A DNA stretch of 64,000 nt from Obrimoposthia wandeli (Eukaryota): assembly GCA_977020255.1 (NCBI GenBank), contig CDROCS010000462.1, positions 1-64,000 on the forward strand. Reading direction: 5' to 3'. The notes beneath the pieces were generated by a model. The model had not been told where the DNA came from, made no database searches, and saw only the letters and a program-made list of their open reading frames with translations. The position numbers and the translations under genes were made by a program. Numbering within the stretch: position 1 is the stretch's first letter; each line of letters starts with the position of its first letter. Shown here in pieces: positions 13,840-40,485 of this stretch.

Positions 13840-13854
13840 CGTATTCAAAAATAG

Positions 13855-17009: not shown

Positions 17010-17309
17010 TTAGCCTCCTATCATCACTGTCGGGCAACCCAAAACAATAGAGCCTCCATGTGCGGTACTATCACCCATTCGCGCAGCTGGCTTGCCACCA
17101 ATCAATACGGTGGCGCTGCCTTTAACAATACTATCTGGTGGACCGACACAGACACACATATCCCCCACCCCTGCAGCGGGCATCTTACCGATCAGTACCG
17201 TCGGTGCGCCCGGGCCTACAATAGGGCCGCCGACGTGAGGAATAGGTACCACGGCTGGTGTCTGCATCGGGCAAACGTGCATATCTGTCAGGCGCGCTGC
17301 TAAAGTCAT
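17010..17309 (-). CDS. PAAR-repeat spike protein
   Basis: LAARLTD, MPAAGVGD, KPAARMGD with conserved His/Cys. Confidence 0.92.
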   Translation of the reverse strand: MTLAARLTDMHVCPMQTPAVVPIPHVGGPIVGPGAPTVLIGKMPAAGVGDMCVCVGPPDSIVKGSATVLIGGKPAARMGDSTAHGGSIVLGCPTVMIGG

Positions 17310-17899
17310 TTTTCAGCTCCTACAACCGTTTTTAATATCCCTTTACCACCATGAGCAAGATCTTCAGCTAGTGTACGGGCATCACGGTAGTACGCTTGGT
17401 AGCTTTGCCACTCAGGTTTTAATGCTGCAGTATTGATCGCTCCCGCCACCGCTTTAGCATAGAGATATGGTGCTGGTAATACTTCAGGTTGATCGGTGCC
17501 TGCGATACTGCCCGCGCCACTCCAAAATACCGCTTGTGCCAACCAGCCCATGGCACAGCTATGCCCTAACGTTTGCACACGTTGCTCTATCAATCGACGC
17601 TTGGTCTCCTCTGGCTCCAACACCCAATTTTTGCAGTGCAGCAGAGTATCACGCTCTAAATCACTCCAGTCGTCCCAGCGCAATTCCAGCACGATGGCAC
17701 ACCACCAAATAGATTCGCGCATTGGCAGTGCATGAGCAACATAATTAGTCAGGTCGATAAAATAAGCGGCATCGTACAATTGCCCTATCGTTTGCTCCGG
17801 AGTGTTTTGTCGATCTATCACCTCCTGCGCATCTTCTGAAGGTTCTATCCGCGACCAAATTACTTCACTACTGGAAAAAGGTATTTTTTTATAACTCAT
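17306..17899 (-). CDS. T6SS spike-associated protein (DUF6931-like)
   Basis: AHALPMRESIWWCA and AQAVFWSGAGSI motifs; coupled between vgrG and PAAR. Confidence 0.65.
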   Translation of the reverse strand: MSYKKIPFSSSEVIWSRIEPSEDAQEVIDRQNTPEQTIGQLYDAAYFIDLTNYVAHALPMRESIWWCAIVLELRWDDWSDLERDTLLHCKNWVLEPEETKRRLIEQRVQTLGHSCAMGWLAQAVFWSGAGSIAGTDQPEVLPAPYLYAKAVAGAINTAALKPEWQSYQAYYRDARTLAEDLAHGGKGILKTVVGAEK

Positions 17900-19920
17900 C
17901 AGTTCACCATTACCACGCCGCCTTTCACTGTTGTCATTCCACTGGCAGATATTTCCGCCATTGCAGCACCTTTAACTGTCGCCCCCACTGTTCCAGAGAG
18001 CTCCGCATTTAAACCCGAGGCCTTCAAATCTGCCGTGGCTTTAATGGCGATGCTAGCGCTGGATTTGATATCAACTTTAGTTGTGCCTTTGATTTCCACT
18101 TGCATGCCATCGACCACCACTTTTGAATCACCTTTGAGTGATATTTCGCTACTTTTAAGCTCTATCTTAGAACTGCTGATGGTCAATTTGCTCGAACCGA
18201 CTTTGAGGGTAATCGTATCATCGGCTTCTAACGTAATAGTCTTGGCTTTCTCGGTGATGGCGTCTTTCGCGGTCAAGCTGTAATTTTGCTCACTAGTGGC
18301 ACTAATGTCTTTCTCAACAACTAAGGTGTGGTTGCCTGTCACTTCCTCTTTACTATCATTTAATACTTTAACACTGACGTCATTTTCAACTTCCAGAGCA
18401 TAATCTTTTGCCGCATGAAGATAGAGTTGCTCATTATCTTTTTTATCATCAAAACGCAATTCATTAGACTCACCCTCCAACTTGGTTTTAATGCCCGATT
18501 GTGTGGTGTCTTGCTCGGCGTAAGGCACCTTATGCTTGCTGTTGTACAGACTGCCCGTCACTACCGGTCTATCGATATCTCCGTCTAAAAAGCTAACTAA
18601 CACTTCCTGTCCGGCGCGCGGGATGAATTGCAACCCGTAACCATTGCCAGCCATTGACTGAGCGACTCGGACCCAGCAACTGGTCTTGTCACCGCTGCTG
18701 TCGTCCCAGTGAAACTTTATCTTCACTCGCCCTTCGTCATCACTGCTCGGCTCATGCTCATTGGCACCGGCAACAACTGCGCTATGCATGCCATGAATCA
18801 GTGGTTTGTTATTTTCTATTGGATAAAACGCATGCTCTTTAGCGCTGCAACTGAACTCCATTGTCTGCGATAGCTGTCCTTCACCGTCAACGCTATAGAG
18901 GTACTCATTACTGATAACAAGGTAATCACCCAATTGTGAGGGATCACTGTGTGAGGCCAAATTAATATAGTGACCGCAGCTGATAAAAGCATTTTCTGTG
19001 CGTGCGCTCACTAACGTGTGTTGTGAGTCCAATTGCGCGCGCTTGGTCTTTGCCAGTACTTTGGCAAGATCATCCTGTTTACCGCTGATGCTCGCTTGAG
19101 AGTAGCGAAAATCGACCAATTTACTATTGCCAGCTAAGGTGTAACTAGATTTGGTCGAGGAAGACTTTACCAGTTTAGTTTGCTCTGGATCATAACTGGC
19201 CAATTCAAGTTTAGCCGCGTGATAACGCAACCGCGGCATCCACTCTAAAATGGTCGGCAGTGTTCCGCTTCTGGTTGCGGCGCCATCAAAACTTATTTTA
19301 TCGTCATCACTGAAGGGTTTAGCGGCGTCTTGCAGCACTAATACCTCGTTTTTCTCATCGCGATCAAAGTAAAAGTGAATACCCTCTTGTGCCAAGATTC
19401 TACTGATAAAGTCATAATCAGTTTCATTGTATTGCAGGCAATATTCACGTTTGGTACTCGGCAAGGCATTAAGTTTATATTTACCTTTGAAACCCAATTC
19501 ATCAAATATAGACGTAACTATTTGCTGACTACTTTGATCTTGGAAGACACGATAATTCCTACTGTATTGCAGCAGTGCTAACCAGGGCTGTACTGTCAAA
19601 AAAAAGCAGTGACTTTTATCCTCTTCACTACTAAATAACGACTCGACCCCGACCACTACACCACTATAACTGCGTATCGCTTTTCTACTCGTCGATAATT
19701 GATCGAATACCTCACAGCTAACCGTTTGGCCCAGCCATTTAGCACCATCTGGATCACTGCTCAATACCGTTGTTTCAATAGTCGAGAGAACTGATAGTTG
19801 CTCGTTAATAGACAGCCCCGTGACGACAAAGTCGCTGCCACTTTCATCTTTTATTGTCAGCTGGCTACTTTGCGGTTCTCGGCTGATACCTTTTAAATTA
19901 TTTCGCTGACGCAATGACAT
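17899..19920 (-). CDS. vgrG: T6SS spike protein VgrG (no C-terminal effector extension)
   Basis: REYCLQYNETDYDFISRIL, GRVKIKFHWD, FIPRAGQEVLVSFLDGDIDRPVVTG; ATG at 19920 behind AGAGGT. Confidence 0.95.
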   Translation of the reverse strand: MSLRQRNNLKGISREPQSSQLTIKDESGSDFVVTGLSINEQLSVLSTIETTVLSSDPDGAKWLGQTVSCEVFDQLSTSRKAIRSYSGVVVGVESLFSSEEDKSHCFFLTVQPWLALLQYSRNYRVFQDQSSQQIVTSIFDELGFKGKYKLNALPSTKREYCLQYNETDYDFISRILAQEGIHFYFDRDEKNEVLVLQDAAKPFSDDDKISFDGAATRSGTLPTILEWMPRLRYHAAKLELASYDPEQTKLVKSSSTKSSYTLAGNSKLVDFRYSQASISGKQDDLAKVLAKTKRAQLDSQHTLVSARTENAFISCGHYINLASHSDPSQLGDYLVISNEYLYSVDGEGQLSQTMEFSCSAKEHAFYPIENNKPLIHGMHSAVVAGANEHEPSSDDEGRVKIKFHWDDSSGDKTSCWVRVAQSMAGNGYGLQFIPRAGQEVLVSFLDGDIDRPVVTGSLYNSKHKVPYAEQDTTQSGIKTKLEGESNELRFDDKKDNEQLYLHAAKDYALEVENDVSVKVLNDSKEEVTGNHTLVVEKDISATSEQNYSLTAKDAITEKAKTITLEADDTITLKVGSSKLTISSSKIELKSSEISLKGDSKVVVDGMQVEIKGTTKVDIKSSASIAIKATADLKASGLNAELSGTVGATVKGAAMAEISASGMTTVKGGVVMVN

Positions 19921-20033
19921 TATTAAACCTCTAAACTTATCTTTAGCTGATCTGTAGATGATTGGCTTAACGACAATGTATCCAATAGATTTCGCGCTGT
20001 AAAAACGTACTTTTATCACGCTTTATGGCCGAA

Positions 20034-20227: not shown

Positions 20228-21034
20228 ATGAAAGCCTTTATTGAAATACATCTCAAGCTAGTTGTCACTATATGGCTAATTTTGTTCAGTGTGCTCGGCC
20301 TGTTATTGATGATGAATTACATGAAATTTTCAAGCATGATGTCTAATGTCGTGTCCTCACAGTTGCAAGTTATTTCCAGCTCTATCCAACGCTCAATTAT
20401 CAAGGCCGAGCAATTGGGATTGCCCTTAGCTGAAATGCAAAATCTGCCTTTACTGCTGCAACGCGAACAAGCACGAGATCCGCAAATACAGAATATATTT
20501 ATCATCGATGTCAGCGCAAAAATACTTTTTCGAAGTAGCGGCGACGCCTCGCAAAATATGCCTATCCAAAACAACTTACTGCGCAAAGCCACTACCGGTA
20601 AAGAGCAACAGTGGAGTATTGAAAGTGATACTCAGCTCTACAGTGGGTTAAAGCTCCTCGATGCCACTGAGCAGTTAATGGGTAACATTATTATTATTTA
20701 CAACAAGCAAGGCTACTTGGCGATATCCAATCAAGTATTTTATCAACTGATTAACGCTAGTATTGCTATTTTCGTGCTGTTTGCTCTCTTGGTATTTTTA
20801 GCGGTCCGCTGGGGTTTCTCCGATGTTAATAATGTGCTCAAAGTGATCAATAGCCAACTCAAACTTAAACAGACAGCGCCACTGCAACAGGCGTTGAAGC
20901 CCGATACGTTAGCTTATCAGTTTGCCCGTCAAATTGAGCAGCGAGAAAAAATGAAACGACATGTTTCCGAGCAGCTCGATGCTTGCTGCTCTGGTGTAAA
21001 AGAAACACAGCCATCATCAGGATCTACCCAATGA
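20228..21034 (+). CDS. Two-TM membrane protein with periplasmic sensor-like domain
   Basis: TM1 near the N-terminus, about 140-aa extracytoplasmic stretch, TM2, short cytoplasmic tail with no output domain. Confidence 0.6.
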   Translation: MKAFIEIHLKLVVTIWLILFSVLGLLLMMNYMKFSSMMSNVVSSQLQVISSSIQRSIIKAEQLGLPLAEMQNLPLLLQREQARDPQIQNIFIIDVSAKILFRSSGDASQNMPIQNNLLRKATTGKEQQWSIESDTQLYSGLKLLDATEQLMGNIIIIYNKQGYLAISNQVFYQLINASIAIFVLFALLVFLAVRWGFSDVNNVLKVINSQLKLKQTAPLQQALKPDTLAYQFARQIEQREKMKRHVSEQLDACCSGVKETQPSSGSTQ

Positions 21035-23133
21035 AGCAACAAAGCGATGGCCTCACCGGCTTTATCAATCGACGCCTGTTCTATATCACTTTAATTAGCA
21101 CGCTACTGGCGGCAACTCTTAGTGCCTTGTTCACTTTGGCACAGTTCAACCAGTCATTAAAACCGAAGCTGTTACAAAAAGTTGAAGCGGTGGTCGACTC
21201 AGTGCGCCTAGATGTCGAGCTCGCCGTCTCTGTCGGAATACCTATCGATCAAATTAGAGGCCTTGATCCCTACCTCAATGAGATAATTGAGAAGTATCCA
21301 GAATTACAGTATCTCGCCATCAGCGATCGCAGCGGGGAATTACTCTACCAACAAAGCAGTGGCGAGGTGATGATCGCCAATATAAGCGAAGCACAAGCAC
21401 TGCGTGAAAACCTCGACCAATCACAAACTTCGTTTTTTTATCAGTTGCTCAATAGTGCCTCTGAACTCACTCAGTTAGTCCCCGGTATGTCTTCTCAACA
21501 CAGCGGCGCCGATGACTACTTTTTACCGTTAGAAGTACAGGGGAATAGCATTGGTGCCGTGCAAATTGGCCTTAATAGTGGCTATATTCGCTCGCAACTG
21601 AGTAATGTGTTTTTCGATATTGCCATCGTGTTAATTGCTGTCCTGTTAGTTTCATTTGAAGTGGTTATGGTATTGGTTATGTTTTACGTAACTGCGCCCT
21701 TACGCCGTTCCGAAAAACTATTACAGCGCCAAGCCAGTGGCGACTTCAGCGTTAATGATCAAGGTGATGGGCAGGGCGCTATCGAAAGTTATAATCGTCA
21801 GCTCAATCGCGACTCTGTCGATTTACAGAAAACCTACCGCAGCGCGGCTGCTCAACAGAACACCAACTTGAGCGATCAGTTAAAGCAAGTTGCCCAAAAA
21901 TTTAATCTAGTCAAAGTATTAAAAGAGAAAAGCAGTAATGTATTAGATGCACGTATTCCGCTGTTTGTCTTTGCTTTTGCCGAAGAGCTACAAAAATCCT
22001 TTATGCCGCTCTTTGTCGCCCAGTATTACGAGCCCAACCCTTGGCTCAGTCAAGATATCGTACTGGCATTACCCATTTCCGTCTTCATGTTGGTGATTGC
22101 TGTCGCCACACCTTTTGCCGGTGGCTGGGTCGATCGCTGGGGCAATAAACGACTCTTTATGCTCGGTTTAATTCCCGCACTTTTGGGTTACATCGGCTGC
22201 GCACTAGCGATGGATAGTTATCATATTATAGCCTCACGCGCTGTCACTGCACTAGGATATGCCATCATTACCATTAGTTGTCAGGGCTATATTGCGGCGG
22301 CAGTCTCCGCTGAAAATCGTGCTAAGGGGATGGCTATCTTTGTCGGTGTACTCATGACCGCAACGATGAGTGGTACAGCTCTGGGTGGTATTATTGCCGA
22401 TCGCATTGGCTATCATAATGTATTTTTCATCAGCGCTATTTTAACCTTAGCCGCCGGTGCACTTGCCTGGATGATGCTCAGTGCGGACAAACCTGAACCT
22501 AAGAGCGCAAAAATCAAAAAAGGCGGCTCTGCCATGAAGGCGCTGGCAGGTAATACAGAGTTTGTATGTCTCATAATATTTTGTGCCATTCCAGCCAAGA
22601 TAATATTAACCGGCTTCCTCTATTACTTAGTACCTCTCTACTTGATATCTCTAGATGCCAGCCAATCAGAAATTGGCCGTATCATGATGGTTTATGCGCT
22701 AGTGATTATTCCGCTCAGCCCAGTGGCATCACAGTTTGCCGATCGCTGTGGAAAAATGATGCACTTAGTTATTATAGGCACCATTATCTCTGGCTTGGTT
22801 CTAATTTCCCTCTATCAGCGTGAATCGATAATGAGCGTTCTACTGGCGATTGCATTAATGGGTGCTGCCCATTCTATCCTCAAGGCACCACTGATCGCAG
22901 CGGCCCTGAATGCTGCAGAGGCCACCGCAAACGTTGGTCGCACTACAGTGCTTGGCATACTGCGCACCAGTGAGCGTATTGGCAGTGTACTCGGACCTAT
23001 TCTTGTCGGGACTTTACTGCTGTTCTACAACTTCTCGGAAACCCTGGCGATCATCGGTATTGGTATCGTTTGTAGCGGCCTGATTATGGCTTATTATTTC
23101 CTTCGACCGACTGCAGTGGAGACAACCCAATGA
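21031..23133 (+). CDS. Fusion of a periplasmic sensor/HAMP-like region to an MFS transporter
   Basis: N-terminal TM-periplasmic-TM-VTAPLRR linker; MFS from about 21946 (GGWVDRWGNKR, GGIIADRIG, ASQFADRCG); ATGA overlap sets the start. Confidence 0.8.
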   Translation: MKQQSDGLTGFINRRLFYITLISTLLAATLSALFTLAQFNQSLKPKLLQKVEAVVDSVRLDVELAVSVGIPIDQIRGLDPYLNEIIEKYPELQYLAISDRSGELLYQQSSGEVMIANISEAQALRENLDQSQTSFFYQLLNSASELTQLVPGMSSQHSGADDYFLPLEVQGNSIGAVQIGLNSGYIRSQLSNVFFDIAIVLIAVLLVSFEVVMVLVMFYVTAPLRRSEKLLQRQASGDFSVNDQGDGQGAIESYNRQLNRDSVDLQKTYRSAAAQQNTNLSDQLKQVAQKFNLVKVLKEKSSNVLDARIPLFVFAFAEELQKSFMPLFVAQYYEPNPWLSQDIVLALPISVFMLVIAVATPFAGGWVDRWGNKRLFMLGLIPALLGYIGCALAMDSYHIIASRAVTALGYAIITISCQGYIAAAVSAENRAKGMAIFVGVLMTATMSGTALGGIIADRIGYHNVFFISAILTLAAGALAWMMLSADKPEPKSAKIKKGGSAMKALAGNTEFVCLIIFCAIPAKIILTGFLYYLVPLYLISLDASQSEIGRIMMVYALVIIPLSPVASQFADRCGKMMHLVIIGTIISGLVLISLYQRESIMSVLLAIALMGAAHSILKAPLIAAALNAAEATANVGRTTVLGILRTSERIGSVLGPILVGTLLLFYNFSETLAIIGIGIVCSGLIMAYYFLRPTAVETTQ

Positions 23134-24143
23134 TCCGCGTTTGCCTCATCATATTGACTAGCCTATTAGCTAGCACGTTAGTCAGTGCTAAGGACTTTAG
23201 CAAAGACAACCCCGCTCAAATTTACATGGTACTTTGGCGCGGTTGTGAAGAGGCCTGTCAAGGTTTCAAACAACAGCTTGAAGCACAGCAATTGCCAGTA
23301 ACCATTACCTTGCGTGATGCCGCGCGCGACAAAGGTAAACTGAAAACTTTTTTAGCCGAGGCAAAGCAGCTAAAACCTGACCTTGTAGTCACTTGGGGGA
23401 CCTCTGTCAGTAAAGCTATTATCGGCACTTTAGAGAGTGATGCCAGCGATCAGTTTTTAGGAGACATCCCTGCTCTCTTCATGATTGTAGCGGACCCTAT
23501 TGGAGCGGGTATTGTACAAAGCTATCAACGTAGCGGCAGAGCTTGGGTTACCGGTGTTCGCAACCGAGTACCTGAGGAAGTGCAAATTCGTACCATTAAA
23601 GATTACTTGGGATTGAACAAACCTAATATTGGTGTTATTTACAGCCAATCAGAGCTCAACTCGGTTCTCAATACTCAAAAGCTCGAACAATTAAGCACGA
23701 CTTTGGACTTTACTTTGACTCCATTAAAGTATCAGTTAGACCCACAGGGCAAACCTCTACCTAATCAACTTCCTCTTTTAATGGATGAGCTCGCCGCAAG
23801 TGGCGTCGATATGATTTACGTGGGTTCAAGCTCGTACAACAGAGCTAACCGCCAGGCTTTTATAGCCCAAGCAGACAGCGTGGGTTTACCGGTCGCCAGT
23901 GCTTATGAAGTGATGGTGGCTAAATCAGATGGTCTTATTGCCGTGGCTAATCGCTATTACAATGTCGGTAAACTAGCGGCTAACCAGGCGCGTAAAGTTC
24001 TTTTTGAAGACGCAAAACCTGGGGAATTAAATATCCCCTCGCTGAGTCGATATTCAATTTTTATCAATATGCACAGTGCTCGTAAGTTTAAGCTCTACCC
24101 ACCTATCCAACTGCTTCGCTTAGCCGAGTTAGTCAACCCATAG
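23130..24143 (+). CDS. ABC_sub_bind-type periplasmic solute-binding protein with no ABC partner nearby
   Basis: Signal peptide; DLVVTWGT, ADPIGAGIV, VTGV, IFINMHSARK motifs; ATGA-coupled to the MFS gene. Confidence 0.8.
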   Translation: MIRVCLIILTSLLASTLVSAKDFSKDNPAQIYMVLWRGCEEACQGFKQQLEAQQLPVTITLRDAARDKGKLKTFLAEAKQLKPDLVVTWGTSVSKAIIGTLESDASDQFLGDIPALFMIVADPIGAGIVQSYQRSGRAWVTGVRNRVPEEVQIRTIKDYLGLNKPNIGVIYSQSELNSVLNTQKLEQLSTTLDFTLTPLKYQLDPQGKPLPNQLPLLMDELAASGVDMIYVGSSSYNRANRQAFIAQADSVGLPVASAYEVMVAKSDGLIAVANRYYNVGKLAANQARKVLFEDAKPGELNIPSLSRYSIFINMHSARKFKLYPPIQLLRLAELVNP

Positions 24144-24275: not shown

Positions 24276-25061
24276 TCAAGACGTAGCGCCTTTCACTCTC
24301 TTAGCACAGTAATCCACCAATCGATTATTCAACCGCCAGGTGTGATCGTGTACCTCATCCGTATGGCAGTGTTTGAGGTACCGCTCGATACTTTGATCAA
24401 ACACTCCGGCGAGTGGGCTGGCTGACTGCCAATCTGGCTGAACCACCTGTCCTCTCATTGCCGCCTCTAAAATACACAAAAAACTATATTGATCTTTTTC
24501 GATATCAGCACAACCCATTCCCTGTTTCTGCTCTGGCAGAGAGAAATGTCTAGAATAGCTGTAGAACGCCCTTTTACTATCATCACTGTGTGCTGTTCTG
24601 GCATTAGCAAAATCTAATAGCGCTACTTGTGGCTGTCGATACAATACATTGGACGGTTTAAGGTCACCGTGAACTACACCACTTAGGTGTAATTTTTCAA
24701 TTGCTTGCTGTAGTTTCCACAGTACATTGGCCAAACCTGAATTATTGGTATTTTTTGCGGAGTTCTCCTGCCACTGCGCCCTTATAAGCTCAGCGAGGCT
24801 CTGTCCTACGATGTAGTGTGACAGTAGTAAATCATAGGAATCAAAGCATAGCAGTTCAATAAAACTTCCAGCACTGAGCGTATCATTCAGCTGTTGCCAG
24901 TGTGCCTGATTAGAGAGGAAAAAACGTTCGCGCTGCGTCGCAGCGACTTTAACCACATAATCTTGGTGAGAACTGTCGCGAAGGCGCCAACTAGAGCGCC
25001 CCAATCTTTCGACACAGTGCCAATCTCTATCGCGACAATAATGCTTAATTATTTCATTCAC
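24276..25061 (-). CDS. Soluble Hanks-type Ser/Thr protein kinase, T6SS-associated
   Basis: VVKV lysine, VHGDLKPSNV, DFA (for DFG), LPEQ; overlaps the tssM stop. Confidence 0.75.
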   Translation of the reverse strand: MNEIIKHYCRDRDWHCVERLGRSSWRLRDSSHQDYVVKVAATQRERFFLSNQAHWQQLNDTLSAGSFIELLCFDSYDLLLSHYIVGQSLAELIRAQWQENSAKNTNNSGLANVLWKLQQAIEKLHLSGVVHGDLKPSNVLYRQPQVALLDFANARTAHSDDSKRAFYSYSRHFSLPEQKQGMGCADIEKDQYSFLCILEAAMRGQVVQPDWQSASPLAGVFDQSIERYLKHCHTDEVHDHTWRLNNRLVDYCAKRVKGATS

Positions 25062-28000
25062 AGCGCCGATGGAAGTTTTATTTTACTAAAATAGCCCGCG
25101 GTAAAGGGTGATTTCGCCCCGTTAACACGTAACACTAGAACCGCACCTTGTCCCTGATTTTTCACAGTGAGTACTGAAACAGCAGGGTCTTTTCCGGTTC
25201 GCGCCTGCATGGTGTCGGCGAGCTTAAACCAACTCCAAAAACCGACAAAGCTAGCGCGTAATATGTGTTTGTCGATGCTTTTGAGTTGCAGTTCGATATC
25301 TTCTGAACTCTGCTGCGGCTCTGGCCACTGCACGCTTGCCCACAGGGGCGGGCCATTGCGATAGCTGTATATCTTGCGCTCACTGTACAATGATATTTCA
25401 GACAGAGCAGAACTCATATCCTGCGCCCGGATTTCAAAATCTACTTTCAGCACACCTGCGCTGTACATACGCTGCTGGATATCTTTAACGGCCACTAAGA
25501 AGCGACTTAATTCATCGTTAAAAGGTACATTGCTGTTACTGAGGAAGCTTCCCATATTGCGCTGCCCAGTTATGTCTACATTAAAGTAACCTAAGAACTG
25601 ATTACTAAAGCGATCGACCATGCCATCTACCGCGAAAAATTGATTGAAATTCTGTGCACTAACATCTTGCGTTGCGCTCGTGTTAAAAGGGTAAAACCCC
25701 GCCAATTTACTACGATAGAAGCTATAAACATTGCGGCGCCACTGATCGTTAATAAAGCTGCGAACTTCTAACATCGCGACAGTATTTAGCTCATTCGCCG
25801 ATCGAGTGAGATACCCTGCAATTAAGCGATCATTGTAACTACCTGCAAGGCTCGTCATCTCCTCCAGTGGATTCACGCCCGCACTCGCCGATAATTGCTG
25901 AAGTAAATCCGCTCCACGCGGCTGCTGAGCCAATGCTGTTTCCAACCACAAATTCGCTTTACTCAATTGAGCAATCGCCGCGTCAATGGGTGTTATCCCC
26001 TGATCGTCTGCCGTGACCAAACTATGTAATGCGGTAAATGGGCGACCAATTTCCTGTGCTATTTGTTTCGCTATTTCACTGCGTTCCAAATCGCGTTGCG
26101 CAGGCTCAGCACCCTCTGCAACCTCGGGCATAATCGCTAACTCGTTCAAGTTAGTGTGGTAGCTCATTAACATCTGCAACTTTTTCAGCGGAGAAAAAGT
26201 CGAATCGGTGATCAAATTAAGTTGGTTGCGTACCTGTAAACTTCCCTGTGCATCACGCCATTTAACATTGCGATAGAAGGTTTGCCAACTGGCAATGTAG
26301 TCGGAGATATATCGCTGCTTTAGTTCGCGGTTAATACGGCTAATCTGACTCGCACTGCTCACTTTTCCGATGATTCCCTCGAAATCGCCAATCGCCTTAG
26401 TAGCCAATTGAAAGTCGTCGCCTTTGAGCAGTTGCTCAAAGCCTTCACGAGTAAAGATCCGCGGCATGAGGTAGGGGCTATCATCTTCGCTATAGCTGAA
26501 CACTAACTGCGCCTTTTGTCCTAAGCTCTGTCTTAGATCAATCCTTTGACTCATTTGGGGGCGCTGCATTATATGCTGGTAGAGTAATTCGCTAATATCA
26601 TCCTGAGACAGTGAATCTTTAACGATATTAATCAGTGTCTGTTCACCTTTTTGTGGCACTACACCTGGGCGCAAAGCATCTGCTAAGATGGTACGAAAGC
26701 GCTCTATTGTGGATATATCACTTTCGCCTTCGGCCTGCAGTGAACTGACATAATAATTAATCAGCGGAACTTTATTGACCCGCTTAGGGTTGTAAAGTAG
26801 TTGGTATAAATTATAGAGCTCTATGGTTTTAAGCTTGTCTTCCAGTTTATTGTAGACAAACATATCTTTGAGTAAATAATCACGCAGCGCTGTGAGTAAA
26901 ATGTTATCTAATGCCTGCTCATAGCTTTGCTCTACTTCTGCTTCGATGCTCGGATTCGGCAAACCTGCAAGCACGTACCAAGGTTTAGCTGTACGGTAAA
27001 TTTCACGAATCTTACGCAAATCACTTAGGCTGTAAATAGGGCCTGTTAAATCGTCAATATTTGGCGGATCTACCTGTAAATTTTCACGATATTGTACTAA
27101 TTGAAGCTGGGCTTTGGCATTTAGGTCGCTGTAATAACTATAGTTACTTTCAAGTAGAAATCCCGCGGCAACGATACCGGCAAGTAATAATGCACCGTAA
27201 CTCCAGCCCCAAAAGCGGTAGCGTCTCTCACGTCGACGGTTTACACCAACCAAGCGCGACTCAGGTAGGATCGCTCTATTAAACAAACCTTTGCTGAAAA
27301 GCACCTTACCTGGCTCAGTCTCGCTCTTTAAAGCTTGTTGATAACCCAATTGCGCACTCAGCAACATCGTTAACTTATCTATGCTGTTGGCCTGCGCGCC
27401 GATATTACTAAAGAAATAGCCTCGAAAATTCAGCCCTTTATCAGCGAAGGTACTGTCATCAAACAGCTGACGTAAAAAGCCACCCAACTCCGTCTTTAGT
27501 AAACTGAACTGATAGGGCCCCATCACAATAGAATCACGATATTCAGGATTCAACTGCGCTTTTAAGCCCCGGGTGGTGTGCTCTAATAGCTGTTGCTGGA
27601 TTTGGCTGTAAGATTGCTCAAACCACTGTTCGTCAAATCCATCTATCGCTGCAGGACTTAGCGCACCCAGCGGCTGCTCCAGTCGCTCATCATCAAAACA
27701 AGAAAATAATCGCTGCAGATCACTCAGCGCAGAGAAATCTGTTACCAGTGTATAGCAGGGTAAGTTGAGTCCCATCGCACTATTACAGCGGCCCAATAAA
27801 TTGCGCCAGTGCTTCGCTCGTTCATTTACCTGTGACTGCTGCTGCTGCATTAATTGCGCAGCAGAAAGCCCTAGTAGCACCCCATTGACACCTTGACGCG
27901 CTCGGCGCTTTTCGAACAGCTGTAGTAGACGGGTGATTCCCTCTTCAAAATACGGTGATTCAAACTGCTCTATAGCAACCACAACAATTTGATCACTACG

Positions 28001-28441
28001 CCAGAAACTCAGTGGTGCTAAATCATCCCTATCTTCTTGATCAAGTAACTCCAGCCCTTGGCTAAGTAACAGCTCCCGCGTGTGTTCTTGTGCATCGCTA
28101 AAAAGAAGATACCAGGGAGTTTTGTAATTATCACCGCTGCGGCTAGAAGCGTCATCCGCGCGATTAAAGTGCGCCGTTATAGCCCGTTCAATACCTTTAA
28201 TGCGCTCGCGCTCTGCTAACACATCATCACTGGGTACTTGCGCTCTATTCAATTTAACCAGCCAGTAACACAAGCTACTCAGTAAACTAGCACTGATTAT
28301 AGCAACGGCACTTATCGAGAGAATCTGCCACGGTAATACCCAACCCCACCACTGGAAATACCACGCGGTAAAAAGTGCACACCCTATGAATAAAATACTG
28401 AGTAGAACAAAAGGCCAAAGCTGTAATTTTTTGGTTTTCAT
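25058..28441 (-). CDS. tssM: T6SS membrane complex protein TssM/IcmF
   Basis: TPWYL, RQGVNGVLL, LPCYTL, FRGYFF, FYPFN, FFAVDG; 1127 aa. Confidence 0.95.
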   Translation of the reverse strand: MKTKKLQLWPFVLLSILFIGCALFTAWYFQWWGWVLPWQILSISAVAIISASLLSSLCYWLVKLNRAQVPSDDVLAERERIKGIERAITAHFNRADDASSRSGDNYKTPWYLLFSDAQEHTRELLLSQGLELLDQEDRDDLAPLSFWRSDQIVVVAIEQFESPYFEEGITRLLQLFEKRRARQGVNGVLLGLSAAQLMQQQQSQVNERAKHWRNLLGRCNSAMGLNLPCYTLVTDFSALSDLQRLFSCFDDERLEQPLGALSPAAIDGFDEQWFEQSYSQIQQQLLEHTTRGLKAQLNPEYRDSIVMGPYQFSLLKTELGGFLRQLFDDSTFADKGLNFRGYFFSNIGAQANSIDKLTMLLSAQLGYQQALKSETEPGKVLFSKGLFNRAILPESRLVGVNRRRERRYRFWGWSYGALLLAGIVAAGFLLESNYSYYSDLNAKAQLQLVQYRENLQVDPPNIDDLTGPIYSLSDLRKIREIYRTAKPWYVLAGLPNPSIEAEVEQSYEQALDNILLTALRDYLLKDMFVYNKLEDKLKTIELYNLYQLLYNPKRVNKVPLINYYVSSLQAEGESDISTIERFRTILADALRPGVVPQKGEQTLINIVKDSLSQDDISELLYQHIMQRPQMSQRIDLRQSLGQKAQLVFSYSEDDSPYLMPRIFTREGFEQLLKGDDFQLATKAIGDFEGIIGKVSSASQISRINRELKQRYISDYIASWQTFYRNVKWRDAQGSLQVRNQLNLITDSTFSPLKKLQMLMSYHTNLNELAIMPEVAEGAEPAQRDLERSEIAKQIAQEIGRPFTALHSLVTADDQGITPIDAAIAQLSKANLWLETALAQQPRGADLLQQLSASAGVNPLEEMTSLAGSYNDRLIAGYLTRSANELNTVAMLEVRSFINDQWRRNVYSFYRSKLAGFYPFNTSATQDVSAQNFNQFFAVDGMVDRFSNQFLGYFNVDITGQRNMGSFLSNSNVPFNDELSRFLVAVKDIQQRMYSAGVLKVDFEIRAQDMSSALSEISLYSERKIYSYRNGPPLWASVQWPEPQQSSEDIELQLKSIDKHILRASFVGFWSWFKLADTMQARTGKDPAVSVLTVKNQGQGAVLVLRVNGAKSPFTAGYFSKIKLPSAL

Positions 28442-29631
28442 TGCAGCGGCTGCGCCTCTTGCGGAGTGTAATAATAGTAAAAGACGTCACTAAATCCCAA
28501 GCTTTGCAGTTCACTGCTCAACGTTTGGGCGCGCGCTTCGGTTTTGGTCTGAATAACCACTCTATATTTATCGCGGATAAAAATAACTTGGGCCATCAAA
28601 GACTTAATTTTTTCTCGCCGCAGGAATTGAATGGCTTTTAAACGCGAGGGAAAAGCGGCAATTTCAAGCGTCAATACTGGATCTTTACTGGCTAGCGAGC
28701 TAGTGGCAGCCGTGCTATTTACCCTGGATATTTCTAATGCTTTTTGACCACGCGTCGGTCGCATTTCAGTATTAACAGATAGGTAGACTGCCTCTTTTTG
28801 CTTTTGTCCTTGCAGATGCTTAGCATTGAAGCTGGCCAATTCGCTAAAACCTTCCGCCTCTGCACTGCGATGTGTTTGGAACCAGTAACTACTGGCGGCA
28901 AACATAATAATCAGTGCAGCACAAAACAGTACTAACTGTAAGGCAAAGCGAATAGGTGAACGCGGTTTTGCTGTGCGCGGTAACGGGACTGCTTGTAAAT
29001 TATCTAAATTGAGCGCCGGATTACCTTCAAAAACGGCTTGCTCTAGACGGTACATCGTCTCTTCAAGCTGCTCACGTCCATGTAATCGATATTGGCCTCT
29101 GAAACCTATTTTGATAAACACGTAGATTAGTTCGAGCATATCCGCAAGAATTTTAGGCTGTTGTAGCGCTTTTTCGGTGACGAGGAAAAATTGTTCTCCA
29201 CCATCGCGAACGCCAAACAAATCACTCACTAAGGTGTTATTTTCCCAACTGCTTTGTTCACCCCACTGCGAGTGAAGAATAAATTCATCTAGGGCGATAC
29301 TAAATAGGAAACAACACTTATCCGCTACGGTAGCGGGGTAATCCAACTGACTAACTCGCTGTTTTAATTGTGTGATCTGTTCAACCAAAGCTTTACGAAA
29401 ACGATATATATCATCCGGCAGAGGCATCCGAGAAAGAGCTACACAAGTTGCCAATAAGGGAGTGCCCGCATTAAGTAGCGGGTTGTTATATCCTTGAAAA
29501 TGCTCCAGGGCAATCAAGTCTTCATCGCGATTTTTAAGTGCCCCCGCGCTCGCAAGTACTTGCAAAGCACCGGTGGTACTGTCACCACGGCTGACTTCTA
29601 TCGTTTCTTCATCGAGAAAATCCATCGTCAT
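28438..29631 (-). CDS. tssL: T6SS TssL/DotU with C-terminal SPOR-like domain
   Basis: NPLLNAG, ALDEFIL, GGEQFF, IGFRGQY; TM; C-terminal EIAAF..YRV..A..L..LGFSDVF. Confidence 0.9.
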   Translation of the reverse strand: MTMDFLDEETIEVSRGDSTTGALQVLASAGALKNRDEDLIALEHFQGYNNPLLNAGTPLLATCVALSRMPLPDDIYRFRKALVEQITQLKQRVSQLDYPATVADKCCFLFSIALDEFILHSQWGEQSSWENNTLVSDLFGVRDGGEQFFLVTEKALQQPKILADMLELIYVFIKIGFRGQYRLHGREQLEETMYRLEQAVFEGNPALNLDNLQAVPLPRTAKPRSPIRFALQLVLFCAALIIMFAASSYWFQTHRSAEAEGFSELASFNAKHLQGQKQKEAVYLSVNTEMRPTRGQKALEISRVNSTAATSSLASKDPVLTLEIAAFPSRLKAIQFLRREKIKSLMAQVIFIRDKYRVVIQTKTEARAQTLSSELQSLGFSDVFYYYYTPQEAQPLQ

Positions 29632-29636
29632 TCAAA

Positions 29637-30962
29637 CTACCCCAGGGCAAACAGTTTTAATTCTAAATCTGGAATACGCGCATCGATATGCGCCACAATA
29701 GGTTCACGCTTTTCTAACAACTCTTGCCAGAACTTGTGATGAGTATCAATCTCTATATAGCAGATATCCGTTCGTGGCTTTAACTCACTTGGCGCGACCG
29801 GCAGGGCGCTCAAACTGACACCTGAAAGACCATTGCGTACCACTTCCGCTATCTGGCTCAAACCGCAAAGTTTACAGGCACTTGGGAACAGACGAATCAG
29901 GTTAGCAGCACCTATACTTGATTCCACACTAAGGACAAAGCGATAATTCTCCATCGTGTGAATATCACTGATGGCTGTGCGCAGTAAACGACGTTTTTCG
30001 AACAGGTTACTATCCCAGCTAAACTCTCGTACTCTGTCGCTTTGTACCAGCGATAACTGCTGGCGTAACTGGGCAAATAACGGCAGGAAATTCGCCGCTA
30101 AATCCTCATTGATCAAGGCGCGAGTTGGTTCGACAACACTGGGATTAAAAGCGGCTAATTCCGCATTCAACGTGCTCAACTTTTGATAAAACTCACTGAT
30201 ATCAGTGTTAGGTTTCTGCAAGGTTAAACTGAGCCAGGGAATCCAGCGATTCAAAGTTTGCAGCCACATATACTCATGCATTAGTGTCTGGTCACTTTTG
30301 CGCTCGCGTCCACTATCAATGCGCTCGACGACCGCCTGGGCACGTGTTTCTATCAACACTTGTACTTCTTTTAGTCGATCGATGAGAACATGCGAGGCGC
30401 CGTAGTGCAAAACACTGGGAATAAAACTATGGTCGAGTACCACCTTACCGCTCTCGCGCTTTTCCAATACACGTGCTATCGCAATAGTGGCCAAGCCCGA
30501 ACAGTCCTCTCCTTCCAATAACAAGCGGATGTTGGCCTGAGCCAAGTCAGTGTCAATACTGTTACTACTATCATCACTACTGTCATATAATCTAGACGAT
30601 TCCACATAGTAGCGACGCTTTTGAGCCATCGCTCCGCTTTGCGCTTCACCTTCAACGATCAGTGGCAGAGCGAGATAGATTTTTTTCTCCAGTGTGCCGT
30701 CAGGTATCTGCAATAACAACTCGCGATCGCTTTCAAAAAAACTGCCATCGCCAAAGATCCCCTGACTTTTCAGCATTGAAAACTGACCTATTTTCAAGCG
30801 TTCAGTATCTATCTCCAATGCGGTTAAACCGTAATTTTGAGCCGCCGCTAGTGCACCTACATAGCGCTCTATGTAATAGTTTAGATAGCGTTCTTGCTGC
30901 TGAAAGTGCTGCGGGGCGATAAACATCCCCTCCTGCCAGACGACTTTGCGATGCCTTTTCAA
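29637..30962 (-). CDS. tssK: T6SS baseplate TssK
   Basis: KVVWQEGMFIAPQHFQQQERY; LSALPVAPSEL; TTG start behind GAGG. Confidence 0.95.
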   Translation of the reverse strand: MKRHRKVVWQEGMFIAPQHFQQQERYLNYYIERYVGALAAAQNYGLTALEIDTERLKIGQFSMLKSQGIFGDGSFFESDRELLLQIPDGTLEKKIYLALPLIVEGEAQSGAMAQKRRYYVESSRLYDSSDDSSNSIDTDLAQANIRLLLEGEDCSGLATIAIARVLEKRESGKVVLDHSFIPSVLHYGASHVLIDRLKEVQVLIETRAQAVVERIDSGRERKSDQTLMHEYMWLQTLNRWIPWLSLTLQKPNTDISEFYQKLSTLNAELAAFNPSVVEPTRALINEDLAANFLPLFAQLRQQLSLVQSDRVREFSWDSNLFEKRRLLRTAISDIHTMENYRFVLSVESSIGAANLIRLFPSACKLCGLSQIAEVVRNGLSGVSLSALPVAPSELKPRTDICYIEIDTHHKFWQELLEKREPIVAHIDARIPDLELKLFALG

Positions 30963-30975
30963 AGGATTTTCCTCA

Positions 30976-31470
30976 TCATAACTGCCACCAAGATTTTTTT
31001 GGCTTGGCCTTCATTGTTATATCGACCACTAGGCCGTTGACTTGCACTGAAATTATTTGCTGATCGGGATTGTCATCTAAACGTAGTACCGCTTTACCAA
31101 CTGCACTGCGATAATCGGCAAACTCGGCAAACACCGCTAAGTAACGAGTATCGCGTTGGATATCCAATTGCAGCGTTTGCTCCCCAGGTAACATCGGTTC
31201 TAAATACTGCGCATCAATTAACGATGCACCTAGTACTTTACGATCATCGAGGTAGATATCCAGAAATTCTGCATTGTTAAAAACACCCGGTTCGCGCAAT
31301 TGGTATATTCTTAAAACAATCGGATGCGATGTTACTTCATCATATGGGTTTACCTGATCACCAACATTCAACTGTGTGCTAACTGAAAAGGGTACATTAC
31401 TGGGTACAGGCGTCGAGGAGCAAGCGATCATAAGTGCGCTCAAACCCAACAATAACAATAGGCGCATCAA
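30976..31470 (-). CDS. tssJ: T6SS lipoprotein TssJ
   Basis: Lipobox MIAC; VNP..PIVLRIYQL; YLAVFAEFADY. Confidence 0.92.
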   Translation of the reverse strand: MMRLLLLLGLSALMIACSSTPVPSNVPFSVSTQLNVGDQVNPYDEVTSHPIVLRIYQLREPGVFNNAEFLDIYLDDRKVLGASLIDAQYLEPMLPGEQTLQLDIQRDTRYLAVFAEFADYRSAVGKAVLRLDDNPDQQIISVQVNGLVVDITMKAKPKKSWWQL

Positions 31471-32408
31471 TTTTTACCTCGTAGCTCTTCCATGAAAATA
31501 GAGGCAAACTGACGGTGAAACTCGCGCCTTGCCATCTTGCGTTTAAACTGTTTTTTATAGAGTTGCCAATATTTTTTATCCTTGTTACCCCAGCCGGTGA
31601 TATAGCCATTAAACATTTCTTCGAGGTACTCAGGCGCCATTTCCTCGATGAATTTATCCATACTGGTTTGTATACATTGCATCAGTGTATCGTAGCTATG
31701 GGGATCAGAATTATTGCGTTGCTGGGCTAATAACATTGTTAATTGTTGTAAATTTTGCTGCGCGGTATCTGTCACGCCCCCCTGTGACTCCACCGTGACA
31801 TGATTGCTCATTGTACTGGGCTGCATTTGTTCGTCTTCAAAAGGATCTATACCCAGCTGCACTTCACCTAGTGCATTTTGCGCACTAAAGCCGCTACTTT
31901 TTTCACTCATTTTAGCTGGTTTGACCTCGTGATCCATCGCTGCCATATCGATATCTTCGCGCATTCGCATCTTTTCAGCTTCAACTACTTGCGCATCAGT
32001 GACATCAAATTCATCAACACTAAATAATGGCTCACTGAGCGGTTTTTTTTGTGCCATCTGTGATACATCTGCATCTGTCGCAGCGAGTACCGACAAATCA
32101 GTCACTAGTAATAGGTAATCACCAATTTTCCATATATCGCCATCGCCAATAGCGTGATACTGACCGCGTGAAAGTACTTTGTCATTAACTTGCATACCAT
32201 TGGTGCTTTTATTAACAACTTGATACCTTCCCTGCTCATCGCGGCTAACTTGAGCGTGAACTCGCGATAGGCTCTTAGAGAAATCAGGCAGTTGAATCGT
32301 ACAATCATACGCACGACCAATGGTTCCCCCAGCCGGTGGCAGTGATATTTGGCGGCTGCTAACTTGCTCGTTTTCAGGTATTTCAACCAATTGAATATTG
32401 ATACTCAT
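31467..32408 (-). CDS. T6SS FHA-domain protein (Fha/TagH-like)
   Basis: TIGR, LSRVHA, STNG FHA motifs; start at the TGATG overlap. Confidence 0.88.
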   Translation of the reverse strand: MSINIQLVEIPENEQVSSRQISLPPAGGTIGRAYDCTIQLPDFSKSLSRVHAQVSRDEQGRYQVVNKSTNGMQVNDKVLSRGQYHAIGDGDIWKIGDYLLLVTDLSVLAATDADVSQMAQKKPLSEPLFSVDEFDVTDAQVVEAEKMRMREDIDMAAMDHEVKPAKMSEKSSGFSAQNALGEVQLGIDPFEDEQMQPSTMSNHVTVESQGGVTDTAQQNLQQLTMLLAQQRNNSDPHSYDTLMQCIQTSMDKFIEEMAPEYLEEMFNGYITGWGNKDKKYWQLYKKQFKRKMARREFHRQFASIFMEELRGKN

Positions 32409-33127
32409 CAGCTTTCCTTCAGACAACGGGCCAGCGAGCGGTTAAACGTCGGCAAAAAATTGGGATTAAGTTTGAGAAAGTCTTTAGCGAAATGCACACT
32501 TAAATCTTGTTTCTTTAGCGCTACTCGCTTGAAGTAATCCAGCGGGATTCCCTGCATTTTCATCGAGTGCTCAAACACCAGTTCGTACTCTAGCGCAACG
32601 TCAATCTCTCTTTGCCATAACATTTGCAATAACGTATCGGCATTGCGTGGTTTCTTCACCACATTATAACCATTCTTTTTTAAAAACAACCACTTGCTAG
32701 TATTGAACTTAGCACCATAACGCGCTTGATACTTAGATGCCTCACTGTCTAAAGTTAAATTAGCACTGGGCGATACAAACCAAGACAACGCTTCGGAAAT
32801 AACTGGATCAGAGGGTATGGCAAATTTAGCTCGCGCGGCATTGGCCGAGCCTGAAAAAAAACCGTCCATCTGGTTAGTTTCCACCAGTAACTGCGCCTTA
32901 TCCCAGCTCATCATGTGAAGCTCATACGGCTGTCCCATTTTGCGCAAGGTACATTTAACTCGATCGAGCGCCACGCCACCCATCACATCATTTTTCAACG
33001 TTTGATAAGGTGGCCACTCTTGAGTAGCCAATTTGAGGCGTTCTATGGCTCCTACTTGTGCAGTGACTACCAGTAATAGCCCTGCTAACAAGGGTTTCGT
33101 TTTATCTATCTTTCGCAATAGCTTCAC
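32408..33127 (-). CDS. Family-3 periplasmic solute-binding protein inside the T6SS operon
   Basis: Signal peptide; ATQEWPPY, MSWDKAQ, MDGFF. Confidence 0.75.
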   Translation of the reverse strand: MKLLRKIDKTKPLLAGLLLVVTAQVGAIERLKLATQEWPPYQTLKNDVMGGVALDRVKCTLRKMGQPYELHMMSWDKAQLLVETNQMDGFFSGSANAARAKFAIPSDPVISEALSWFVSPSANLTLDSEASKYQARYGAKFNTSKWLFLKKNGYNVVKKPRNADTLLQMLWQREIDVALEYELVFEHSMKMQGIPLDYFKRVALKKQDLSVHFAKDFLKLNPNFLPTFNRSLARCLKES

Positions 33128-33201
33128 TTATATATTCCATTTCAATCACTGCTAGATATTGAACCGCTTCAATACCTAGCGGGCTAAATGATAGCTGTTA
33201 T

Positions 33202-35805: not shown

Positions 35806-35816
35806 AGCACTACCTA

Positions 35817-36761
35817 TTATTGTAATAATATTTTGTGTAAAGCATCTGGCTTACGCTCCGGCGCAAGGCAGTTCGATTCTCCCAATCGCAGTGATTGCTG
35901 CGAATGACTCAATAAACGTGGTGCACTAATAAACTTTCGGCGCACACATAAAAATAACTTTATCGGGGTCGACTCACGTAAATAATGATGTACTAATCGC
36001 TTTAACGTGGCCGAAAACTCACTGTCGCCACTAATTTTGAGATATTCTTCGCGATTACTTGGCGACACGGTAATCTCCAGTGTCTTCGCTTGCAAAGTAC
36101 AGCGTTTACCTAGGCATACTCCCTGACCCAAACGGTTGTTCGCTCCCGTTTTGGCACTGAGTTGCGACAGCATCGACTTAGGAAGTAAATGGTGACTGTA
36201 AAGCTGCGCTTTAGCGCTAACTTGTAATGAAAAATAGTCAGTCAATATCTGTTGCAGTACTGCCAAACTATTGCTTTTTTGACCCAGCAGTAAGCTGTAG
36301 GGCAATAGCGCACTGTCTTGGTCACATAAACCCGCCAGAGAATGCAGTGCACTACGCTGAGAAAAACGCGTTAAGTTCCGTCCTTCAAAGCGCTCCTGCT
36401 CTTGGCGTAATAACAGATGATTACGCTCTCGCTCTGCTATATAGAGTTGATAATAGCGATGATTAAATATGTTAAGGAAATCAAGTAAGGCGTGATTATC
36501 ATCGTGCAGACTCGCCAGTAGCTGCTGGTAAAAGTAATCTGGCAATACACTTCTCGCCCCACTAAGGGCCTCTAATGCTATTGATATCTCAAAGTTATCC
36601 CCAGAGCGTTCGATTTTCTGCACTTGGGATAAGTTGGCGTTGGCTAAAGGTTCCACATTAAACATCAGCCGCCCGTGCGAGCGACTATGGCGTAAAATAC
36701 GCACTACCTGTACTAATTCATATTCGCTAGCCTGTGTGCAAAGCTGCTCCACTACAGGCAT
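35817..36761 (-). CDS. tssG: T6SS baseplate TssG
   Basis: LSGARSVLPDYF, DFLNIFNHR, LQQILTDYF, NRLGQG. Confidence 0.88.
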   Translation of the reverse strand: MPVVEQLCTQASEYELVQVVRILRHSRSHGRLMFNVEPLANANLSQVQKIERSGDNFEISIALEALSGARSVLPDYFYQQLLASLHDDNHALLDFLNIFNHRYYQLYIAERERNHLLLRQEQERFEGRNLTRFSQRSALHSLAGLCDQDSALLPYSLLLGQKSNSLAVLQQILTDYFSLQVSAKAQLYSHHLLPKSMLSQLSAKTGANNRLGQGVCLGKRCTLQAKTLEITVSPSNREEYLKISGDSEFSATLKRLVHHYLRESTPIKLFLCVRRKFISAPRLLSHSQQSLRLGESNCLAPERKPDALHKILLQ

Positions 36762-40369: not shown

Positions 40370-40448
40370 CCATGATTCTCTAGTAATAGAAAGAAGATTA
40401 GCTCAATGGCTAATTTAGCATCCTGTGCTTTTGCTAGAATCGCACTGG

Positions 40449-40473
40449 AAAAAAAGGCGCCCTGAGGCGCCTT
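40449..40473 (-). terminator. Rho-independent terminator between tssC1 and tssC2
   Basis: On the minus strand aaggcgcc-tcag-ggcgcc followed by a T run. Confidence 0.75.
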
Positions 40474-40485
40474 CCAAAGCATTAT

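Follow-up and report, generated by a model that had tools for sequence, protein, structure and literature searches.

A three-gene sensor, MFS carrier and binding-protein unit in a type VI secretion locus as a distant, split variant of vtsB and vtsC

The accessory genes vtsA to vtsD of one type VI secretion system (T6SS) subtype have been known since 2009. In the genetic study of Weber et al. from that year, VtsA, VtsC and VtsD are said to activate hcp and VtsB to repress it; the study is reportedly the only lead on the control of vts-type T6SS, and it offered no mechanism. Here we describe a related unit of three genes, g1, g2 and g3, which lies inside a complete T6SS in a 64,000-nucleotide stretch of DNA (the window; GenBank assembly GCA_977020255.1 of Obrimoposthia wandeli, contig CDROCS010000462.1, positions 1 to 64,000 of the forward strand). 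As summarised in PMC8861277, hcp expression and the stress responses of V. anguillarum are both influenced by VtsA-D; the same paper gives the vtsABCD arrangement for V. anguillarum, T6SS3 of A. wodanis and M. viscosa. In Vibrio fluvialis, an MFS gene and an ABC-type periplasmic gene beside VflT6SS1 were described as its 'left junction', that is, as a flank (PMC5371669). The trio encodes a stand-alone sensor subunit (g1), a second sensor fused through a linker to a major facilitator superfamily (MFS) carrier (g2) and a secreted solute-binding protein (g3).

Several other described systems share some of these parts. In the threonine-phosphorylation pathway of the P. aeruginosa H1-T6SS (TagQRST-PpkA-PppA-Fha1), T6SS assembly is controlled by an FHA protein and a Ser/Thr kinase with envelope accessory proteins upstream of them, an arrangement that the window may share. 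However, the window kinase has no transmembrane (TM) or periplasmic domain, its cluster has no PP2C phosphatase, the link from trio to kinase is a putative one, and the envelope parts of the Tag pathway (a lipoprotein, a periplasmic protein and an ABC-like pair) are unrelated to the PAS/sCache-MFS and binding proteins of the window. LuxP-LuxQ, TorT-TorS and ChvE-VirA are pairs in which a periplasmic binding protein docks on a periplasmic PAS-like sensor, and like the trio they combine a secreted binding protein with a membrane sensor that carries an extracytoplasmic PAS/PDC-type domain; their output is a histidine kinase, whereas the trio has an MFS carrier and no kinase domain in the same protein. 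DctA/DcuB with DcuS, and UhpC with UhpB, act as transporter co-sensors or transceptors. There too a secondary carrier and a PDC-type sensor report an external solute, and the predicted fold of g1 matches DcuS and CitA, yet in those systems the carrier and the kinase-bearing sensor are separate, whereas in g2 sensor and carrier are one protein and the sensor lacks an enzymatic output. The TRAP and TTT transporters, as binding-protein-dependent secondary carriers, pair a binding protein with a non-ABC carrier as the trio does. Their membrane parts (DctQM, TctAB) are unrelated to the MFS of the trio, their binding protein belongs to a different family and, unlike the trio, they contain no sensor or HAMP-like parts.

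Architecture of the trio

The genes g1 (20228..21034), g2 (21031..23133) and g3 (23130..24143) lie on the plus strand and encode proteins of 268, 700 and 337 amino acids. The length of g2 is counted from ATG 21031, which we adopted in place of the automated start at TTG 20983, in agreement with the starts of its homologues. Both junctions are ATGA overlaps and, together with the open reading frame (ORF) coordinates, agree with a preliminary description of this DNA as holding three ATGA-coupled genes between vgrG and a kinase gene. Overlap of start and stop codons is kept in 15 other loci, and in every informative locus g2 has a g1 homologue before it and a PF04392 gene after it. The three genes are conserved together, with their translational coupling, and either of the junctions can be fused in nature.

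The preliminary description had proposed that g1 is a TM-periplasmic-TM protein with no output domain, and this was borne out. The protein contains two hydrophobic helices (residues 11-29 and 175-193) and matched no family in a Pfam scan. Its AlphaFold2 (AF2) model (pLDDT 80) leads from TM1 into a long helix and a five-stranded PAS-like alpha/beta core, followed by TM2 and a cytoplasmic tail of about 70 residues, which forms a helix-loop-helix without enzymatic output. Foldseek matched this model to the extracellular domains of WalK/YycG, CitA and DcuS and to the PAS domain of PhoR (TM-score 0.78), and also to a WalK model, over its TM-PAS-TM-HAMP part. Searching with a g1-family profile recovered 1065 representative clusters (at 50% identity); this points to a large, unannotated family of g1-type sensors that is seemingly always tied to MFS carriers.

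The first 220 residues of g2 have the same layout as g1 (TM, PAS-like domain, TM), and the two families are homologous (hhalign probability 96%, E 2.5e-9). In the AF2 models of the two sensors (pLDDT 75 and 80) a long N-terminal helix and a PAS-like alpha/beta core stand between the TM helices, and by sequence the domains gave only a sub-threshold match to sCache_3_2 (E 0.03). By these comparisons g1 and the N-terminus of g2 are paralogous extracytoplasmic PAS/sCache-like domains, each flanked by two TM helices. The second TM helix of g2 (21598-21690) is almost invariant across two proteobacterial classes; it contains near-invariant acidic residues, D196 and E210, within the membrane or at its edge.

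The remainder of g2 was described beforehand as a HAMP-like linker leading into a full MFS carrier. The shared sensor layout and the complete carrier were both recovered, and the linker is best termed HAMP-like because it has no Pfam HAMP match and only a weak match to true HAMP. It spans residues ~221-300 as helix-connector-helix with a conserved pattern (P223 / G237-D / G249 / L258-N259), and the g2 model aligns with the TM-PAS-TM-HAMP region of WalK. The Pfam HAMP model (PF00672) matched neither this linker nor the g1 tail, even at E 1, and comparison of the linker with true HAMP by hhalign gave E 0.002 at a probability of 13%. A conserved DARIPLF motif separates the linker from the carrier. 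The carrier (residues ~309-690) has 12 hydrophobic segments and matches MFS_1 (PF07690) over residues 312-630 (E 3e-50; 171 bits against a cut-off of 33). Its motif-A aspartates, D368 and D571, which lie in DRxG loops of the two halves, are conserved across 46 sequences, as are several charged residues within the membrane. The nearest curated subfamilies are drug/H+ antiporters (EmrB and Bcr/CflA efflux), with scores far below their cut-offs.

Consistent with its earlier description as a binding protein with no ATPase or permease, g3 matches PF04392 (ABC_sub_bind; E 1e-22) and carries a signal peptide, and no ABC permease or ATPase gene was found in or adjoining the trio, either in the window or in 18 related loci. 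As for the ABC genes at 12207-15449 of the window, they have an SBP_bac_3 protein of their own. The best NCBIfam match of g3 is the tryptophan binding protein TrpX, below cut-off, and its solved relatives (3lkv, 3lft, 6hni) are ABC binding proteins. Even where the nearest T6SS is far away, every g3-type protein carries an invariant WRGCE[ED]xC motif at the first strand-helix turn. This CxxxC motif has no counterpart in classical VtsC, and may correspond to a disulfide, redox or metal site. In Marinobacterium aestuariivivens the g3 homologue (L012:12151-13053) loses similarity after about residue 270 and ends early, a probable frameshift or sequencing error.

Natural fusions occur at both junctions. 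Two g2+g3 fusion proteins (P0081 and P0082; 1033-1034 residues) retain the signal-peptide segment as an extra TM helix, which would place the binding domain in the periplasm, and their existence supports a putative functional link between carrier and binding protein. At the other junction, ten longer g1-profile matches (424-969 residues) were scanned against Pfam. The seven of 537 residues or more (537-969) all consist of a sensor fused to an MFS carrier, and the other three (424-546 residues) contain two sensor stretches and no Pfam family. In proteins of 848-969 residues, P0244, P0247, P0251 and P0263 among them, the g1 profile matches two or three stretches, and we interpret these as natural g1+g2 fusions; one such fusion gene has a PF04392 gene next downstream.

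We also predicted the complex of g3 with the sensor regions of g1 (residues 1-200) and g2 (residues 1-225). The three runs gave ipSAE values of 0.47, 0.27 and 0.47, against 0.00 for the best of three controls, with a contact agreement of at least 45% and a partner pLDDT of at least 81. In calibration, 51 of 78 solved complexes and 2 of 108 mismatches attained the mark, and only 5 of the 78 did so with scores of 0.60 or below. The prediction was a three-chain job, unlike its calibration set, and was run without alignments of our own.

Relation to the vts module and distribution

The precedent of the V. anguillarum vts genes, offered in the preliminary description, proved apt. Two other contigs of the assembly (C4085 and C5394) hold T6SS loci, of which that on C5394 is related and ~50% identical. 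In both, the genes between clpV and fha encode, in order, an ATP-grasp protein (D-Ala-D-Ala-ligase-like), an MFS protein of 734-736 residues, a PF04392 protein and an SBP_bac_3 protein, which is the vtsABCD arrangement. The two loci were considered as paralogues from the same genome, and this was rejected: a C4085 protein is 97-99% identical to proteins of Photobacterium frigidiphilum and P. indicum, indicating a different bacterium.

Comparison with these loci relates each part of the trio to the vts module to a different degree. The N-terminus of VtsB-type proteins has four TM helices, forming two tandem TM-domain-TM units. The g2 sensor profile matched the second of these units (probability 89%, E 2e-6), whereas the g1 profile gave no significant match to the first, so that the correspondence between g1 and VtsB unit 1 is one of architecture. 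In BLASTP, g2 matched two Photobacterium VtsB-type proteins (E 4e-30, 28% identity over the MFS); the carriers are 24-30% identical, and their relationship is distant, with a separate long branch in the tree. BLASTP found no similarity between g3 and VtsC, both of which belong to PF04392. The SBP_bac_3 protein of the window shares 40% identity with the VtsD-type protein of Photobacterium (E 3e-56) and occupies the same position between clpV and fha. No ATP-grasp gene, as the counterpart of vtsA, was found in the window cluster, where g1 takes the upstream place, or in the related loci.

The same likeness extends to the wider vts-type T6SS (V. anguillarum, A. wodanis T6SS3, M. viscosa mts1 and V. 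splendidus VS_1318-1337). As in the window, a sensor-MFS gene is followed by a PF04392 gene, VtsD lies between clpV and fha, and the core is homologous, down to a second tssC-like gene, a short kinase-like gene and an orf429 homologue. The differences are that the first sensor unit is fused within VtsB whereas it is a separate gene, g1, in the window; that the sensor units of the window are larger and followed by the HAMP-like linker; and that the vts-type module lies between clpV and fha, whereas the trio lies at the vgrG end without VtsA. The trio is not in line between clpV and fha, being placed on the other strand in the vgrG-kinase interval, and its relatives sit upstream of vgrG or between PAAR and tssA. 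By these data the trio is a distant, split (g1 and g2) and relocated variant of vtsB/vtsC, with vtsD kept and vtsA absent.

The close family of the trio comprises 19 loci whose g2 is 44-77% identical to that of the window. Occurrence mostly without a T6SS had been named beforehand as a finding that would speak against a T6SS role, and the close family shows the opposite: in 17 of the 19 loci the trio adjoins vgrG-DUF6931-PAAR and/or tssA-hcp-tssBC. The trio is not an insertion peculiar to the window contig. The T6SS-adjacent members span Gamma- and Alphaproteobacteria; they include Marinomonas, Marinobacterium, Oceanospirillum, Halopseudomonas and Motiliproteus MAGs (metagenome-assembled genomes) and Vibrio fluvialis, with Flexibacterium as an alphaproteobacterium, besides contigs from metagenomes. 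Four gene orders were found: divergent from vgrG; upstream of vgrG and in its direction, the stop and start overlapping, as in Marinomonas, where the g3 stop overlaps the vgrG start (in Marinomonas mediterranea MMB-1 the trio heads the vgrG operon); within the PAAR-tssA interval; and g3 alone before tssA, where in one locus it heads the tssA operon. The two exceptions in the close family are a contig-edge locus of an 'Osedax' symbiont and Terasakiella pusilla. In a tree of the g2 MFS domain a single clade of 17 rows (support 86/90) gathers all 16 T6SS-adjacent ones; its 17th row is the 'Osedax' symbiont locus, and Terasakiella is sister to the clade.

To place the trio among whole genomes we sampled 401 genomes, evenly drawn, from the order of Marinobacterium. 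DUF6931 was present in 35, and a sensor-MFS gene lay 2-6 kb from it in six of these. A VtsD-like protein (58-66% identical to the window protein at 32408-33127) occurred in exactly the same six genomes, at the same loci, and in none of the 29 others. Similarly, a short kinase (frames of 251-293 residues) was found in five of the six module genomes and in 0/29 of the other DUF6931 genomes; it was also present in all five further trio carriers. DUF6931 itself was rejected as a marker of the module, being without it in 29 of 35 genomes. The g1 profile missed three VtsB-type loci among the 401 genomes, which were later found by a VtsB query; as this query covered the DUF6931-positive genomes only, modules far from a T6SS may be under-counted.

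The wider family also occurs without any T6SS, so the trio has a function of its own, which at its base does not require the secretion system. In Terasakiella pusilla (L014, JHYO01000019.1) it lies inside a type III secretion system (T3SS) cluster with genes for CesT, SseC, YscJ and the needle. A gene for a membrane HAMP-SpoIIE (PP2C) phosphatase immediately precedes the trio and one for an ECF sigma factor follows it, and STAS and anti-sigma-kinase genes are close by. This layout recalls the partner-switching layout of Bordetella Btr. One metagenomic relative follows a dCache-HAMP-PP2C gene, another distant relative stands beside a cyclase, and others are stand-alone two-gene units. In a further metagenomic relative (L037:3671-5745) the gene of a PLP-dependent (PALP) enzyme overlaps the start of the g1 homologue and is translationally coupled to it. 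This coupling resembles the placing of the ATP-grasp gene at the head of the classical module, a hint that the ligand is of an amino-acid type. Signalling genes are frequent neighbours and speak for a sensory role; the neighbouring enzyme genes leave room for one in transport.

Surroundings of the trio

A complete T6SS surrounds the trio, with PAAR, DUF6931 and vgrG on one side and the kinase and core genes on the other. The vgrG, DUF6931 and PAAR operon (17010..20019, minus strand), the usual neighbour of the trio in other genomes, begins with vgrG (20019..17899) and is divergent from g1. Convergent with the trio is the gene of a short soluble Ser/Thr kinase of 261 residues (24276..25061, minus strand), a candidate cytoplasmic output partner. 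This protein contains no TM or hydrophobic segment, and its HxDxKPxN catalytic loop, DF motif and beta3 lysine are conserved in six homologues. The T6SS core follows on the minus strand (25058..44439), with tssM, L, K, J, fha, the vtsD-like gene, clpV, tssG, F, E, a second tssC-like gene, tssC, tssB, hcp and tssA. Within it, Fha (31467..32426, minus strand) has an FHA domain and T6SS_FHA_C and is the presumed phospho-threonine reader, and the VtsD-like SBP_bac_3 binding protein (32408..33127, minus strand) lies between clpV and fha. The cluster thus holds both an active-type Ser/Thr kinase and an FHA protein, the combination associated with threonine phosphorylation in T6SS; the PpkA-type combination of a TM kinase with a periplasmic domain and a PP2C phosphatase was not present.

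The second, divergent tssC-like gene (VipB + VipB_2; 38951-40369, minus strand) comes after tssC, and the duplication is present in all related loci, including the classical vts-type. Upstream of tssA lies the gene of a 429-residue protein (44625-45914, minus strand) without a Pfam family. A 29%-identical homologue (L010:5786-6901) sits directly after the kinase-like gene that ends the classical Photobacterium T6SS, so the protein is conserved within this T6SS clade. Bordering the T6SS, an ORF for 379 residues (15841-16980, plus strand) without a Pfam family occupies a low-GC stretch (~39-40% against ~46%) and may be an effector-type cargo gene.

The contig is bacterial and stands in a eukaryote host assembly (1.35 Gb in 6912 contigs), in which at least two bacteria are represented. 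Oceanospirillales/Pseudomonadales MAGs and the 'Osedax' symbiont supply the closest relatives of g2, and the window contig resembles Oceanospirillales MAGs and that symbiont. A megablast search of the trio against plasmids returned no match. Scans for sigma-70 promoters and terminators over 19900-24400 gave no more than expected by chance, and no sigma-54 site was seen by eye in the vgrG-g1 spacer.

A receptor, an importer or an exporter

These data allow us to propose, with middling confidence, that the trio is a receptor/carrier which, assisted by a binding protein, relays a small-molecule cue from the periplasm to the T6SS, possibly via the kinase and Fha. In this model g1, g2 and g3 would form one inner-membrane complex serving as a dedicated accessory of the vts-type T6SS. 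The g1 and g2 sensors would pair into a pseudo-symmetric unit, on which ligand-loaded g3, and perhaps VtsD, would dock. The HAMP-like linker would couple docking to the conformational changes through which the MFS cycles, and the ligand may itself be carried by the MFS. In this way the soluble kinase and Fha, acting in threonine-phosphorylation control of assembly, and/or hcp expression would receive a periplasmic small-molecule input from the complex; the ligand is probably amino-acid-like. The preliminary description had already suggested a binding protein that docks on a heterodimeric sensor. The pairing half of that suggestion is supported because the N-termini of g1 and g2 are homologous, VtsB carries tandem units and natural g1+g2 fusions exist; the docking half received weaker backing from the predicted complex.

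Several points weigh against the proposed receptor/carrier. The six module loci of the genome sample probably share descent and so reflect co-inheritance, not six independent events, and the co-occurrence of trio and kinase may likewise reflect only the shared descent of one T6SS clade. The trio-kinase link drawn from this co-occurrence is a putative one. The T6SS cluster contains no PP2C phosphatase, and VflT6SS1, which carries the trio, was reported to be silent under laboratory conditions (PMC5371669). At the level of the proteins, the complex prediction lends weak support to docking of g3 on the g1/g2 sensor, the linker gave no Pfam HAMP match, the kept transport motifs and charged residues of the MFS would fit a plain transporter equally well, and the likeness of the MFS to drug/H+ antiporters makes it an odd partner for a binding protein. 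Finally, distant relatives stand alone or beside metabolic enzymes, so that neither a secretion system nor a kinase is needed for the basic function.

The retained transport motifs and intramembrane charged residues are also what would be expected if the trio were a plain binding-protein-dependent MFS importer, in which g3 captures the solute, the periplasmic domains of g1 and g2 serve only as a docking platform, the carrier imports the solute and any T6SS link is metabolic rather than regulatory, for example the co-regulated uptake of a nutrient set free by killed prey. The stand-alone two-gene units, the coupling of one relative to a PLP-dependent enzyme and of the classical form to an ATP-grasp ligase, and the ABC binding proteins among the solved PF04392 relatives, with TrpX as best, sub-cut-off match of g3, are in keeping with such an importer. 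However, our searches of the literature on binding-protein-dependent MFS and PF04392 found no described MFS that relies on a binding protein, and the nearest MFS subfamilies are exporters. Against an importer also stand the conserved HAMP-like linker and PAS/sCache sensors, which are signalling parts, the recurrence of signalling neighbours among relatives and the presence of kinase (five of six in the genome sample) and Fha beside the trio in T6SS loci, and V. anguillarum vts mutants show altered hcp expression in the summary given by PMC8861277. We consider the importer unlikely. The similarity of the MFS to the EmrB and Bcr/CflA efflux families can instead be read as the mark of an exporter with an autocrine read-out: the drug/H+ antiporter-like carrier would release a small molecule, made by VtsA in the classical form, and the periplasmic binding proteins and sensor domains would monitor its level as a density or kin signal that sets T6SS activity. 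The D-Ala-D-Ala-ligase-like ATP-grasp enzyme of the classical module would fit this, as would the reported linkage of the V. anguillarum vts genes to quorum-sensing and stress regulators (in part as summarised in PMC8861277). Yet the window cluster contains no biosynthetic gene and the subfamily scores lie far below cut-off, and such an exporter seems to us quite improbable.

A last alternative, that the three genes are unrelated neighbours merely flanking the T6SS, follows the treatment of VflT6SS1 as having a 'left junction' (PMC5371669), and in the window the trio does lie on the opposite strand to vgrG. Against it, adjacency is kept across two proteobacterial classes despite rearrangements such as the PAAR-tssA placement and g3 alone at the head of tssA, the g3 stop overlaps the vgrG start in Marinomonas, and the VtsD-like gene accompanies the module in six of six genomes against none of 29. 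We therefore disfavour this alternative as very improbable.

Returning to the receptor/carrier, a broader form of it can be put forward only tentatively, as possible but doubtful. The trio would then be the founding example of a so far undescribed signalling device composed of a heterodimeric PAS/sCache sensor, a HAMP-like linker, an MFS carrier and a binding protein, and would serve as a transmembrane input for cytoplasmic Ser/Thr phospho-signalling, through the soluble kinase and Fha in the T6SS, and, in the T3SS locus and other places, through PP2C phosphatases of the membrane combined with partner-switching or ECF sigma factors. Its MFS would moreover be the first that depends on a binding protein. 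In the literature that we searched, the architecture is new in its split sensor, HAMP-like linker, CxxxC binding protein, co-travelling short kinase and links to PP2C and T3SS; searches on COG2984 with T6SS, and on T6SS with an MFS and a binding protein, returned nothing relevant, and published tables on VPA1029-1032 of V. parahaemolyticus were uninformative.

How contact-dependent weapons take the decision to fire is an open question, and vts-type T6SS occur in Vibrionaceae, Oceanospirillales and some Alphaproteobacteria. The comparison made here gives their accessory proteins a concrete putative architecture of paired PAS/sCache sensors, a HAMP-like linker, an MFS carrier, two binding proteins and a kinase without TM segments, and indicates that the module exists in a second, split form that was earlier dismissed as flanking DNA. 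The co-inheritance of its parts, together with the occurrence of the trio beside PP2C phosphatases and in a T3SS locus, leads to testable hypotheses on the ligands of g3 and VtsD, on the assembly of g1, g2 and g3, and on phosphorylation involving the kinase and Fha.

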